Source of the DNA: Amoeboaphelidium protococcarum X5
Taxonomy: Eukaryota; Fungi; Aphelidiomycota
Assembly: GCA_023515725.1 (NCBI GenBank)
Contig: JALDTO010000346.1
Coordinates: 1-5,488 of the forward strand
Length of the DNA: 5,488 nucleotides
Direction: 5' to 3'
How positions within the stretch are numbered: position 1 is the first letter of the stretch; every line of letters begins with the position of its first letter. This document shows, in pieces, positions 1-5,488 of this stretch. A program made the translations under genes and the position numbers. The notes under the pieces were generated by a model. That model was not told the origin of the DNA. It was given only the letters and a program-made list of their open reading frames with translations, and searched no databases.

Positions 1-2
1 TT

Positions 3-468
3 GTCAGCGACATTCGTTTGATCGTGTTAGCGACAATTTTGTAGCGACATTTGGCTTAAGAGTAGTAAGGTACCCCGGAATTGGATGAATCGGCTCAGCA
101 CAAGAGGAAGGAATCGCCTCATTTCAATCATGCGACCAATCAGCTGATGTAAGCCGCGGAACACGACGGAATACCGTTTCACCGCCGATCGATGGTTCGA
201 CGATATTCTCGCCTGTTATGTTTCATACAGACGCCATGTTCCAGGCCCCGCCTGCATGTCGCCCCTTATTACATCCACATTTATACAGTATGTAGTGGCA
301 TAATGTATTTTGTTGCTAGAGCGTTTCACGACCAGGTATGATGAAGAGGACTTAGATTGGCTTGAAGTCTTTTCTGGTGACTTGCATGATTGTTCTCCAC
401 CACTAGGCACTGTCATGTTTAAATTTATTAGAGACTCGGCTATGTGGAATTACTCACATCTAACTTGA
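3..468 (+). CDS. Possible 3' end of a gene entering from the left (hypothetical), perhaps join(<3..148,231..468)
   Basis: The frame from base 3 reads VSDIRLIVLATILQRHLAQEQQGTPELDESAQHKRKESPHFNHATNQL with TAR in Q/E context. GTAAGC 149 to TTTCATACAG 230 is phase-compatible with a frame reading RHVPGPACMSPLITSTFIQYVVAQCILLLERFTTRYDEEDLDWLEVFSGDLHDCSPPLGTVMFKFIRDSAMWNYSHLT-TGA (466-468). The candidate intron is GC-rich and no homology was recognised, so support is weak. Confidence 0.3.
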
Positions 469-592: not shown

Positions 593-1376
593 ATGAGATA
601 TCCTTACGTGCTTATATCAATTATATCAATTGCTGTTACTACCACCAACTCGCAGTTAACTGGCAAAGCTTGCAATGCAACAGCAATCAACAGCGCGTTC
701 ACTGCTGGTCTCACGTGCATCAGCTAGAAAGATATCGGCTACTGCGATAATAGTAAGTCTTTTCTTATTGTATATATCTAAATACACGTTTAAATTCTGT
801 GTAGATATCTGGTATAGTGTGAAATGCGCTAATAATTACAATTGTTTCAACACGACTGGGTTGATTCAGTGTAAGCCAGCGTAAGCAACAGTGGCGCCTC
901 ATACAATCACGTCTATAAGAGTTACCACCATTACTAGTTACAGCACGGTAAAGCAGTTGTGTACTTAAACCTCTAGATTATCGTCTCAATCAACCACTAG
1001 CACGAAAGTTTCATCAAGGATTGCGACTACCGTGTTTCAGACAGCCACTCAAAGAACATCAGCCACCGTGTATAGTAGAAGCAGCAGTACCAAGTCGCCA
1101 TTGGCCCGCTCAAGAACAACCACGTCGCCTAGTATGTCTCGGTCACCTTCAATCACACCGACAGTGTTGTCAACAACACCGACTGTCCCTATTGCTGGCG
1201 ATGGGAATGACGTGTTGGGTTAAATGGCAAAACTATTCACTGGTTAGCTGTACGTCGGTCACACGGAGAGCTTTTCAATTTTCGCCACTGGTGTAATGTT
1301 GTCATTGATTGCTGTCATGCGTTTAGCTTTCGTCATTCGCAACATTCATAAAATGTACAAAATAAACAGTATTTGA
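593..1376 (+). CDS. 243-aa cell-surface protein: signal peptide + CBM19-like chitin-binding domain + Ser/Thr-rich stalk + C-terminal transmembrane/anchor segment; join(593..752,805..1376); requires TAA/TAG = Gln
   Basis: ATG 593 gives MRYPYVLISIISIAVTTTNSQ (signal-peptide-like). Splicing out 753-804 gives CNATAINSAFTAGLTCISQKDIGYCDNNIWYSVKCANNYNCFNTTGLIQC, with core C-x8-C-x4-W-x4-C-x5-C-F, the spacing I recall for the CBM19 of yeast chitinase Cts1. A T/S-rich stalk follows (about 880-1190), then hydrophobic FSIFATGVMLSLIAVMRLAFVI (1272-1337), a short basic tail and TGA 1374-1376. Five in-frame TAA/TAG. It merges track ORFs 675-884 (part) and 1032-1223. Confidence 0.85.
753..804 (+). other. 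Spliceosomal intron, 52 nt, phase 1
   Basis: Consensus donor GTAAGT at 753, AT-rich body, acceptor ...TTCTGTGTAG ending at 804. Removal joins the signal-peptide frame to the downstream frame (A|AT = Asn) and restores the Cys/Trp spacing. Confidence 0.88.
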
Positions 1377-1714
1377 TCCTTATTATCATTGATAGTTTGA
1401 TTTTAACATTTAGAGTCATTTTCAGTGCATCTAGTGGTGTGATTGTTAAAATCGCATCGGAGCGGTAACCTTAGTCGACGATGCGACCATTAAACTTTTT
1501 TACATTCTGCACCGCAAAACGTCAAATCATTTCGTTTCGCCTCTCTCCGTCGTCCGTCCGTGTGAAAGAAGAAGAATCCGTTTCTAATCCAGTTGTTGCT
1601 TTATTGTTGATCGTCGAAAATCAAATCAATTCTCATAATAATACAGTTGGAAGAATACATTTTAATTGCTCCCTGGCAACACGCTCTGGTACCTCAAATT
1701 TACAATACAAATAC

Positions 1715-1729
1715 TGATTGATTGATTGA
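1715..1729 (+). repeat. (TGAT)3TGA tetranucleotide repeat upstream of the zinc-finger gene
   Basis: TGATTGATTGATTGA, with TGA at 1715, 1719, 1723 and 1727. Confidence 0.8.
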
Positions 1730-1759
1730 CTACTGTTTTCACATCATTTGAATATCAAC

Positions 1760-4231
1760 ATGGATACTTAATATCATCATCGTCAGCAGCACTTCTCTCC
1801 TATTGATTCTGATTAGAAGAATATCATCAGTAGTGTCTACTCTTAGCATCCTCAGTATAGTCCGTACAATAATAATCTATAGTTTATGAACGGTGCAGAT
1901 AGTTTTAATACTGGCCATTCCGTAAAGGGGGCCTCTGGTGGCATCGATGCTGGAAATATCCTATTTGGCTCGCAGAATACTAATCATTCGCATTATCAGT
2001 CGTCGTTCTCATCAAACTCGTCCGCTTCCGGTACTTCAAATGCTTTAGATAAGTCCAGAGTGAGTAAAATTTGGAATTCCCCATTCTCTATGCCATCATT
2101 AAACGTGTCGCTGTTCTCTCCTACCAGCTCTACTCCGACTCCCTAATAGCATTAGAGCTCATTATTGGAACCCGGTATTAATTACGGTGGCGGCCGTATG
2201 AATTATTATGACAATCTGACTAATACTTCGCGTATGCCTTCTGATCAAGCTTCTTATTCTAATGGCCCCTCCAAGATTGATTATAATACATCCACGCTTC
2301 TTGGTGGAGATTCCGCCAGTATGAATGGTAATGCAAACACCACTATCTAACCCGCTTGTAATAATATGGGACTATTTTCTGAATCAACGTCTTAGTTTGA
2401 GAGTACCGTTTTGTCGCATCAGAATTCGCATAGCAACGATATACTTGGTAAATTAAGAAAGCAAGAGTCTGATCTGAAGGCTCGTATCTAGTCGCGTCAA
2501 GAGTACATTAACAAGATGAAGAATGAACTGTGGAGTGACGAAATGGAGCTTGCAGAAATTACTAGAAGAATTGAGTTATTTAAGTCTTAGTCTTTGGGTT
2601 TTGGAGGAATTTCTACTGCTTAAATGCCTGAGTCCTTCTCACAATCGAAGGGATAACCTGTGCTATAAGAGCACCAGCAGACTTTATCCAGCAGTGGTGA
2701 TACTGTCAGTACTAGTAATGATATAAGTCAATTCGACGCTTTAGCTTAGGTGTTCAGCCCTCCTTCCAACAATCAATCTGGATTTGGTACTGCTGCGACA
2801 GTTGCATAGGATTAGAATCATGCAATGAAGGCCAATGATTTGAAGGTCAGTGCCTCTCCTCAAAAGTCAATGTCACAAACCAAGAATCCCTCCGCCGCTG
2901 CTTATAATTAGGACAATGTTTGCCGTAAGTGGAATCGCGGTATCTGTATGAAGGGCTCGCACTGCTCATATTTGCATCAGTGCTTGAGCTGTGGCGAGCA
3001 ACACATGAAGTCCAAGTGTCCTCGATTGAAGATTAGTTCATCAAATGGTAATTTGTCTAGACATATGACGACCCTGAGTGTTAAAGAAGATAACGCGGAA
3101 AGTGTCGATGTCTCTCATGATTTAGAGTCTTCCTAGGTGCATGGCATCAGTAATAAGCATCGACTATCCTCTAATGCCAGAACCATAGTCAAAGATGAGC
3201 CGTGTATTAAGTGGAACTACGCCGAGTGTCAATGGGGCGATCGATGTCATAGACACCATGTCTGTATCAAATGTAGTGGATCTCATCGCCTATTGCAGTG
3301 TCCATCTTAATCTGATGGCGATCGTAGAGGAGATACTCGTAACACTTCTGTCGTTAGTAGTGACGCGAAATGCAATATCGGCGGAAGATCAGAATCTAGA
3401 CAAGTGCAGCTCAGTACTTAGTCCTCTTCTCTTGATGCCGTACAAGGTGATGCTGATGAACCACAGGCTGCAGCCGTTAATACCTCACCGTTGTCAGATA
3501 ATACCACACCGGCATTGATTTAATCATCATCTCCTGTCCGATTCAATGGTAAAATATCTGAAGTTTGCTTTAATTTTAATGATAATCGTTGCAAAATGGG
3601 CAAAAAGTGTCATCGTCTCCATGTCTGCAGTGCTTGTAAAGCTGATGATCACGTCTCTTCTACATGTCCTAAGAAAAAGGTTCAGAGTAGTGTCAGCTAA
3701 AAGAGCGACGATGGAGAAAGTCGTATTGAGTAATTGCATAATCACTAAAATCTTAATTAGAATCGCTCATCGTTGAGATATAATGGCTTAAAGGTTAATA
3801 GAATCTCTGATGAAGTGTGCCTCAATTGGAATAATAATCGCTGCCCTCTGCCCATCAATAAGTGTAAGCGCGTACATGTTTGCAGCTTTTGCAAGTCTCC
3901 ATCTCACAATATATTAAAGTGTATGGATCCAACCTCAGTTGAGCACTATGTCGATGCCGGAGTTGAAATTTGTTACAATCACAATCATCTGCGATGTGAC
4001 TAGAGAAATTGCACCTTGCCAATGCTTGGTAGTGGAAATGGCAGTAGCAGTAGTAAGTCGGATGCTCAGTCAACATCACCACATCAGGCGGATGGGAAAT
4101 CATCAACAATCCTCATCGGACAGCACTGTAAAAGGTTGCACTGCTGTTCCAACTGTAAATCATTTGAGCACACGGCTAAAACTTGCCCTCAAGCCTCCCC
4201 TCCTCCACCTTCTGCATCTCAATCTCTATGA
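1760..4231 (+). CDS. 823-aa multi-zinc-finger protein (5x CCCH+CCHC modules, coiled coil, S/N/Q-rich linkers); putative RNA-binding protein; requires TAA/TAG = Gln
   Basis: Track ORFs 1886, 2165, 2948, 3773 and 4016 share one frame. From ATG 1760 (first ATG after in-frame TGAs at 1715 and 1727) to TGA 4229-4231 there is no TGA or frameshift, only 27 TAA/TAG by hand count (11 TAA, 16 TAG). It begins MDTQYHHRQQHFSP and ends CPQASPPPPSASQSL. Five repeats of C-x7-C-x5/6-C-x3-H-x-C-x2-C-x3/4-H-x4-C, the fifth with a long insertion. Confidence 0.93.
2435..2590 (+). other. Predicted coiled-coil segment within the zinc-finger protein
   Basis: NDILGKLRKQESDLKARI(Q=TAG)SRQEYINKMKNELWSDEMELAEITRRIELFKS(Q=TAG): charged, Pro-free, with heptad-spaced L/I/M (L-x6-L-x6-R-x6-M-x6-D-x6-I, plus the a/d partners). 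Judged by eye. Confidence 0.7.
2921..4186 (+). repeat. Five protein-level repeats of a CCCH finger fused to a CCHC knuckle (2921-3019, 3203-3301, 3566-3667, 3818-3922, 3971-4186)
   Basis: CRKWNRGICMKGSHCSYLHQCLSCGEQHMKSKC; CIKWNYAECQWGDRCHRHHVCIKCSGSHRLLQC; CFNFNDNRCKMGKKCHRLHVCSACKADDHVSSTC; CLNWNNNRCPLPINKCKRVHVCSFCKSPSHNILKC; CYNHNHLRC-(43 aa)-CKRLHCCSNCKSFEHTAKTC. All 8 ligands are present in each module. Confidence 0.92.
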
Positions 4232-4264
4232 CGAGCGTGACTTTTGAATAATTCTGAATTGCGA

Positions 4265-4270
4265 AATAAA
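4265..4270 (+). terminator. Candidate polyadenylation signal of the zinc-finger gene
   Basis: AATAAA starting 34 nt after the TGA, followed by TA-rich sequence. Chance occurrence in AT-rich DNA is possible. Confidence 0.35.
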
Positions 4271-4362
4271 TATATCCTTTCTATAATATAATGTTTCCTT
4301 GGTAAAATCAGCAGGCATAGTAACAAGTGCCAAATAAGGAAACTGATTTAATTGCTTCGCTA

Positions 4363-4401
4363 ATTGGCCAATCACATGAGATTAACGAAGCATTAGCCAA
4401 T
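4363..4401. promoter_or_regulatory. Candidate CCAAT boxes upstream of the third gene
   Basis: Palindrome ATTGGCCAAT at 4363-4372 (CCAAT on both strands, GGCCAATCAC context) and a further CCAAT at 4397-4401, about 100-135 nt before ATG 4499. Confidence 0.3.
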
Positions 4402-4498
4402 ACTGTTGCTTTATCACGCACCCATAAAAAAGCGTCACTTACTTGAGTTACTTTCTTCTTCTCAATTAATTTAAAGCGAAATTTTAATCAAATCTAAT

Positions 4499-5432
4499 AT
4501 GTTAATCTTTAACGGGATCATTGGTGTGCAAACCGTTTCTTGGGCCAAGCCTCAAAAACAATCTTAGTACAAGGTATCCTATCCAAGCACGTGTCAATCA
4601 CTTATTGTGGCAATAGAAAAGCCATACACTGAAGTGGTTGTCTCAGTTTGGCCTAAGAGTGACGCTGATCCTCTAACTAATCACGACGTCTATGAACCAG
4701 GGGCGAAAGGTCTCTATAATCTTTCGGCCTTGATATCACTGTGCATCTTTTTAAGTTGATAATTACATTTAGAACAATAACATTCGCAAAGAAGAAATTC
4801 AAGCATGAACCAGTGAATATTCATTCACGATCTGTGGGTTGTAAATTGCTCATAATATTGTATATGGCGACGTAATTGAACGATCTATACTATTGATGAT
4901 AATTAGTTTCATTGATTGTCGTCCATACTTAACTGATCACAACTCTTCCAATACTTCTACCAGGAGCATAGAAAGAGCAAATAGGCAGACTACCTTCCTC
5001 AAGTTGGAGGGACAGTTAAAGACCTGTTATTCGATGAAAGATTTTACGAATGAACGTCTTACGAATATGGTTTCCTTTGATTCTATGGATGAATTGATTA
5101 CTGTACCTTTGACACTATCACCAATTAACACGCAATTAATTTTAAGTTTATAACCAATCAGCATCAGCATGCTTTAAATATCTTCAAACAATGTTGCGCT
5201 ATTGTAGTCTTATTTCTTAACTCATAATATCAATATGAGCCTTCTTGCGCAATTATCGTCGACGATCCAGTTTCAACCGGATGATTTAAAATTATTGGCC
5301 AGATCATCGTTGATACGATGCGTCCAACACTCTTCAATTGAGTCAGGCCTCTATTCACTCCTGTGTAAGAAATAATCAACTCGAAGAAGACCATGGGTGT
5401 AAAGGGAGTTCATCGTCAATTAAGAAGGCTGA
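4499..5432 (+). CDS. Probable spliced gene, hypothetical protein; start (ATG 4376 or 4499) and intron boundaries within about 4710-4906 unresolved
   Basis: With TAR=Gln one frame is open from ATG 4376/4499 to TGA 4757-4759 (MLIFNGIIGVQTVSWAKPQKQSQYKVSYPSTCQSLIVAIEKPYTEVVVSVWPKSDADPL...). Track ORF 4893-5153 extends through six TAA/TAG to TGA 5430-5432 (...LQPISISMLQISSNNVALLQSYFLTHNINMSLLAQLSSTIQFQPDDLKLLARSSLIRCVQHSSIESGLYSLLCKKQSTRRRPWVQREFIVNQEG). AT-rich acceptor-like sites end at 4772 (CATTTAG) and 4906 (TAATTAG). No family recognised. Confidence 0.5.
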
Positions 5433-5488
5433 ACCTCTTTAGCAATCAAAGAGCAGTTGATATATAAAGAGTGTGTTAAATGGCCACC

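Follow-up and report, generated by a model that had tools for sequence, protein, structure and literature searches.

Glutamine at TAA and TAG in nuclear genes of Amoeboaphelidium protococcarum: candidate decoding tRNAs, eRF1 changes and a mismatched first acceptor pair

The nuclear genes of the aphelid Amoeboaphelidium protococcarum, a parasite of algae, use a stop-to-glutamine code that is real and already known. It is credited to Karpov et al. 2013 in PMC5304391, PMC6299283 and PMC11687900. The stretch of DNA analysed here (the window, 5,488 nucleotides, positions 1 to 5,488 of contig JALDTO010000346.1) is almost certainly nuclear DNA of this species, written in translation table 6, and probably read with dedicated Gln-type tRNAs and a changed eRF1. 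The match to table 6, put forward in the original prediction from the letters alone, is borne out by the rates at which codons change from one gene copy to the other, conserved protein columns, tRNA genes and RNA contigs. The prediction also raised a new reassignment, should the source lie outside the lineages that it listed. This does not apply, as A. protococcarum is a listed lineage with a known code, and a new lineage for the reassignment was rejected. With the code established, what invites further work is the set of tRNAs, which may involve an undescribed step.

The genome of A. protococcarum amounts to 23.6 Mb in 346 contigs. Its genes are paired, with copies that are about 90% identical, and a genome-wide duplication has been reported (PMC10608142). 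A stop-free piece of the proteasome beta-5 gene was 100% identical to the A. protococcarum record MIR68_000627 (KAI3641497.1), which has a paralogue, MIR68_010685; the next match was from Paraphelidium (91%). The NCBI protein of beta-5 has Q at all four TAA/TAG (TAR) codons, which is circular as evidence for glutamine and shows that the code is already annotated. Two metagenomic beta-5 proteins (P0003, P0097) are about 90% identical to that of A. protococcarum and possibly come from uncultured aphelids. Table 6 is needed for this genome, as gene calling with the standard code fragments nearly every gene.

Gene 2 (positions 1760 to 4231, forward strand) encodes 823 amino acids and ends in a TGA stop. 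A recount agreed with the predicted 27 in-frame TAA/TAG codons (11 TAA, 16 TAG) and with the absence of internal TGA. Against 30 CAA/CAG (CAR) codons (14 CAA, 16 CAG), TAR supplies about half of the glutamine codons of this gene, as had been proposed. The run TAA-TAG-CAT-TAG at 2144 to 2155 and the TAG at 2489, both singled out earlier, are present. The longest TGA-free frame in the window spans 833 codons. Shuffling the window 1000 times by dinucleotide gave a longest TGA-free frame of 267 codons on average and 597 at most, and thus 0 of 1000 attained at least 833.

Besides a low-complexity N-terminus and a coiled coil by prediction, the product of gene 2 has five zinc units of the CCCH+CCHC type, all encoded on the forward strand. 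Units 1 to 4 (2921–3019, 3203–3301, 3566–3667 and 3818–3922) are complete Cys/His units. Unit 5 (3971–4186) contains TAG4001 and is split by a Ser/Gly-rich insert, which is retained in RNA, since an RNA-type contig covers 3507–4286 without a gap. The zinc ligands, described earlier as intact, are those expected in the four complete units and in the split fifth. Pfam gave a zf_CCCH_4 match from unit 1 with an E-value of 8.6e-5, below the cut-off. A homolog search with two of the zinc units as queries, whose length rule keeps full-length relatives from view, found none, and an Atlas search returned unnamed eukaryotic clusters only (best 0.91) and no named family. The product is probably a nucleic-acid (RNA)-binding zinc-finger protein, a designation that we infer because no named family or full-length relative turned up. 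A loose poly(A) end in run X9 places the poly(A) addition site of the gene at 4283 (forward strand), 8 bases into the right-hand repeat. Upstream of the gene lies a short (TGAT)n run at 1713–1730, from which other strains lack 4 bases at 1715; a second such run directly follows the eRF1 stop codon (L003:2755-2770).

Gene 1 (593–1376, forward strand) had been presented as one gene with five TAR codons and a TGA end. The codons (at 725, 882, 966, 1221 and 1245, the last four in exon 2) and the TGA stand, but the frame is open only once an intron is removed. Exon 1 (593–752) encodes a signal-peptide-like hydrophobic N-terminus and the start of a 6-Cys domain with the in-frame TAG725. In the contigs from runs X6 and X9 the intron (753–804, 52 nucleotides, GT..AG) is spliced out; the DNA run X8 retains it. 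Exon 2 (805–1376) encodes the remainder of the Cys domain, a Ser/Thr-rich stalk (45% S+T) and a C-terminal hydrophobic segment, and ends in TGA. The copy of the gene on contig C98 has the same length and also ends in TGA. The TAG within the Cys-rich domain, at 725–727, had been cited in favour of the code; the codon is present but lends no support to glutamine, because its counterpart in the C98 copy is TGG (Trp), and it was dropped as evidence. Searched exon by exon, gene 1 gave no significant Pfam match. The 243-residue product is probably a membrane-anchored surface glycoprotein.

The frame at 4893–5432 (forward strand) had been offered as a third example gene. Six TAR codons and a terminal TGA are indeed there, yet the frame is no gene: it is part of a dispersed repeat, lying upstream of the repeat ORF and overlapping its start. 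TGA-free frames as long as this one occurred in 891 of 1000 shuffles, which is chance level. Differences from the C179 copy are spread over the codon positions without periodicity (17/16/18), and other copies of the region carry indels of 1, 2 and 5 nucleotides inside the frame. A 1-nucleotide insertion after 5287 is found in two RNA-type contigs. Pfam gave no significant match to this frame. The frame was ruled out as a gene by its chance-level length, the even codon-position differences and the frame-shifting indels.

The window contains the end portion of the dispersed repeat (4275–5488, forward strand), whose true ORF opens with ATG 5393 in a different reading frame and is cut short by the contig end. 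A full copy (L079:3778-7224, reverse strand) has an ORF of 1148 residues with 46 TAR codons and a TGA end, the start of which corresponds to window position 5393. The N-terminal part of the protein shows a weak likeness to EXO1/FEN1 nucleases (PDB matches, best E-value 0.023), and TnpB/Fanzor-like RuvC and zinc-finger motifs are present in the C-terminal part (Cas12f1-like_TNB, E-value 0.006, weak). The other end of the window (1–76, reverse strand) is the terminus of a second repeated element of 4037 bp, which is missing from the C98 copy of the locus. This element (L083, L084:1997-6033) has an ORF of 1187 residues, the product of which shows DDE-transposase-like motifs and matches DUF6729 faintly. 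Its copies on C57 and C192 are 100% identical and there are many identical ends across the genome, which points to an element that is recently active.

As the contig is short and has a repeat element on either flank, the window might be thought to hold pseudogenes with nonsense codons read in the standard code. The probability of this reading is negligible. Purifying selection is apparent between the copies, with 119 differences at third positions against 37 at second positions; the transcripts are spliced and polyadenylated, and TAR codons occur in essential genes genome-wide. Pseudogenes were refuted on these three grounds. Across the 19 genomic matches to the HSP70 family, for instance, there are 103 internal TAR codons against 2 TGA.

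The duplicated genome provides a clean in-genome test of the synonymy of TAR and CAR. Fifteen gene-copy pairs (6200 codon pairs) were compared, independently of annotation. TAR–CAR exchanges between copies numbered 39 in 377 (10.3%). For the leucine codons TTR/CTR, which served as a synonymous control at the first position, the figure was 40 of 412 (9.7%, p=0.81 against TAR–CAR), while the pooled nonsynonymous T–C controls gave 15 of 1608 (0.9%, Fisher p=7e-18). TAR was found opposite Glu, Lys, Tyr, Leu or Ser codons at 0.2–1.1%. The 27 TAR codons of gene 2 correspond in the second copy to 14 identical codons, 7 TAA–TAG swaps, 5 CAR codons and one His codon. The overall supply of glutamine codons was 205 TAR and 201 CAR, TAR thus amounting to half.

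The positions of TAR in conserved proteins point to the same residue. In the polyubiquitin repeats, TAR was found at positions 2, 31, 41 and 49 in ten cases out of ten, and CAA or CAG occupies these positions in sister repeats. The GGQ motif of eRF1 is written GGT-GGT-TAG in one gene copy, and its glutamine is encoded by CAG in the other. Tabulation of the residues opposite TAR in eRF1, which had been suggested as a check, gave a largely concordant result: glutamine occupies 6 of 7 well-conserved columns (150 homologs), but TAR was also found under a conserved Glu column and under a conserved Leu column, the latter being CAG in the second gene copy. Both cases are as would be expected of ordinary substitutions. 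Together with the exchange rates and the cognate tRNA genes presented below, these columns uphold the predicted glutamine identity, and the equivalence of TAA and TAG with CAA and CAG at glutamine positions is supported by the sequence comparisons.

The RNA evidence consists of assembled contigs, and these derive from other strains or samples. Run X15 is recorded as RNA; X6 and X9 were taken as RNA from the spliced intron and poly(A). An X15 contig over 1774–2031 has a single difference from the window, at 1994. An X6 contig over 1590–2079 has 15 differences, none of which falls in TAA1769, TAG1814, TAG1844 or TAG1880. These four codons are intact base by base in contigs of other strains or samples, in keeping with the expectation that TAR would be unedited in transcripts. 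T>C differences did not exceed C>T (24 against 27 in X6, 39 against 41 in the DNA run). The RNA contigs show that unedited codons are present; rare editing could still occur. Editing of UAR to CAR in mRNA was rejected on the unchanged TAR codons and the lack of a T>C excess. It is most improbable that TAR is edited in this way or encodes another amino acid (Glu, Tyr or Leu). The conserved Glu and Leu columns of eRF1 could be read in favour of the latter, against which stand the exchange of TAR with CAR at the synonymous rate and with every other partner at the nonsynonymous rate, the ubiquitin and GGQ positions, and the Gln-like suppressor tRNA genes.

Gene ends were sampled in about 270 kb of DNA, a small sample. 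In 10 of 10 gene-copy pairs whose alignment reached the stop of both closed frames, TGA was found on both sides, and every gene end examined is TGA, those of eRF1, pelota, polyubiquitin and beta-5 among them. No gene ending in TAR was found among the 10 copy pairs, polyubiquitin and beta-5; conserved genes ending in TAA or TAG had been named beforehand as evidence against the code, and this small sample contained TGA ends only. In one pair (L037/L038), the last codon before the TGA stop is TAA in one copy and CAA in the other. A dual meaning, in which UAR would still be read partly as a terminator beside glutamine, is very unlikely given the uniform TGA ends in both copies and this TAA immediately ahead of a stop, even though the sample is restricted in size and eRF1 largely keeps its NIKS, GTS and YxCxxxF motifs, so that some UAR recognition may remain. 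The genes examined differ in this from the dual-meaning stops of Condylostoma and Blastocrithidia, as they show neither a TAR gene end nor sense use of TGA.

The mitochondrial contig (C346, 28 kb) has ORFs that end in TAA and contain no internal TAR; the code change is therefore nuclear. The mitochondrial cob and nad1 genes (L078, L094) continue into probable intron ORFs. Mismatches in the 5' part of the acceptor stem were seen in three of four mitochondrial tRNAs.

The tRNAs with UUA and CUA anticodons that the code calls for were found, as two genes of each type located in the duplicated regions of C158 and C200. They were identified among Rfam tRNA matches; searching by pattern for suppressor tRNAs brought up background matches only, and a DNA search with tRNA-Gln(UUG) returned its own two copies only. 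The CUA and UUA types are identical at 69 positions, and the nearest other tRNA is tRNA-Gln(UUG), with which they have U73 in common and a near-identical T-arm. From this likeness we infer that both are charged with glutamine and derived from tRNA-Gln. In all four genes (L068, L069, L076, L077) position 27 is unpaired with 43, as C:A in the CUA type and C:U in the UUA type, leaving an anticodon stem of 4 bp. The unpaired 27:43 is identical between the duplicated copies and also occurs in five ordinary tRNA genes. It recalls the 4-bp anticodon stem of the readthrough tRNA-Trp of trypanosomatids (PMC13092985).

Substitutions in eRF1, also anticipated, were found in both copies (human numbering): F56Q, T58A, S60V, R68K, L126Q and K130R. 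The TASNIKS motif reads AAVNIKS (L003, L004). Retained are GTS, E55, NIKS, S70, Y125, C127, F131 and GGQ. Glutamine at position 126 was found in none of about 130 aligned homologs. This position tracks the code variants of ciliates (PMC4482090). In yeast, L123Q (equivalent to L126Q) results in readthrough of 4.4% at UAA, 5.4% at UAG and 3.4% at UGA, against 2.6, 2.6 and 2.4% (PMC4482090 supplement). Because this increase is modest, L126Q alone is insufficient for termination restricted to UGA. A UGA-only eRF1 probably needs several changes, or competition by the tRNAs. It is plausible from these substitutions that the response of eRF1 to UAA and UAG is lowered. A literature search, outside of which the 2022 genome paper lay, found no description of suppressor tRNAs or eRF1 of A. 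protococcarum.

The evidence adds up to the following reading. UAA and UAG are ordinary glutamine codons, making up about half of those in use, with UGA as the sole nuclear terminator. Two dedicated tRNAs (CUA and UUA), apparently derived from tRNA-Gln and presumably charged with glutamine, would decode UAG and UAA. The eRF1 altered at codon-reading positions would probably respond less to these codons. The mitochondrion retains TAA as a stop.

The tRNA genes were sampled further by scoring 63 of 1171 candidates, 59 of which are nuclear genes (L015–L077), all anchored by U8 and A14. The acceptor pair 1:72 is mismatched in 34 of these 59, including all four UAR suppressors, where T1 stands opposite C72, against G1–C72 in tRNA-Gln(UUG). 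Pairs 2 to 7 of the same genes are mismatched in 2 of 354 cells. The mismatch affects 16 of 25 anticodon families, and in 12 of them every sampled copy. Between near-identical tRNA copies, position 1 differs in 15 of 44 pairs and position -1 in 10 of 44, against 1.2% per site in the body of the genes; position 1 thus varies as the leader does. The genome contains two genes of the Thg1 family (PF04446), each in two copies (G000:C154:17455-17979 and C162:219178-219701 for one; C154:724337-725062 and C205:152558-153292 for the other). One is a strong match and one is divergent.

It is conceivable, and we put it forward tentatively from the gene sequences, that base 1 of cytosolic tRNAs is routinely removed and then restored by a Thg1-like 3'-5' polymerase with base 72 as its template. 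Alternatively, an open 1:72 pair may be tolerated. The divergent Thg1-family protein may act in the mitochondrion, where 5' mismatches occur in tRNAs as well. Editing of tRNA 5' ends by Thg1-like 3'-5' polymerases is known from the mitochondria of Acanthamoeba, Dictyostelium and chytrids (PMC4284800). A. protococcarum has in common with these systems a mismatch at the 5' end of the acceptor stem, a conserved 3' strand and a second, divergent Thg1-family gene; it differs in that the genes are nuclear, only pair 1:72 is affected, and the feature was seen here in gene sequences. According to the same review, of 2014, 5' editing was not associated with nuclear-encoded tRNAs except for G-1 of tRNA-His, and a literature search found no report of it. 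Repair of base 1 after transcription, if it takes place, would amount to 5' editing in cytosolic tRNAs, listed in that review as not observed, and would provide a substrate for cytosolic Thg1-like proteins.

The code described by Karpov et al. 2013, as cited in PMC5304391 and PMC6299283, is identical in species and assignment to that found here. UAA and UAG are likewise glutamine, with UGA as stop, in ciliates (Tetrahymena, Paramecium, Stylonychia), Hexamita, Streblomastix and ulvophycean algae (PMC11687900). These table 6 lineages share with A. protococcarum separate CUA and UUA tRNAs and changes in eRF1, both at position 126 and within TASNIKS. In A. protococcarum, however, the code is of independent origin, in an opisthokont, and the related aphelid Paraphelidium is without it (PMC6299283). 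Position 126 of eRF1 is Gln in A. protococcarum and mostly Phe in the ciliates with the same code (PMC4482090). The suppressor tRNA genes of A. protococcarum further differ by their T1:C72 and their unpaired 27:43.
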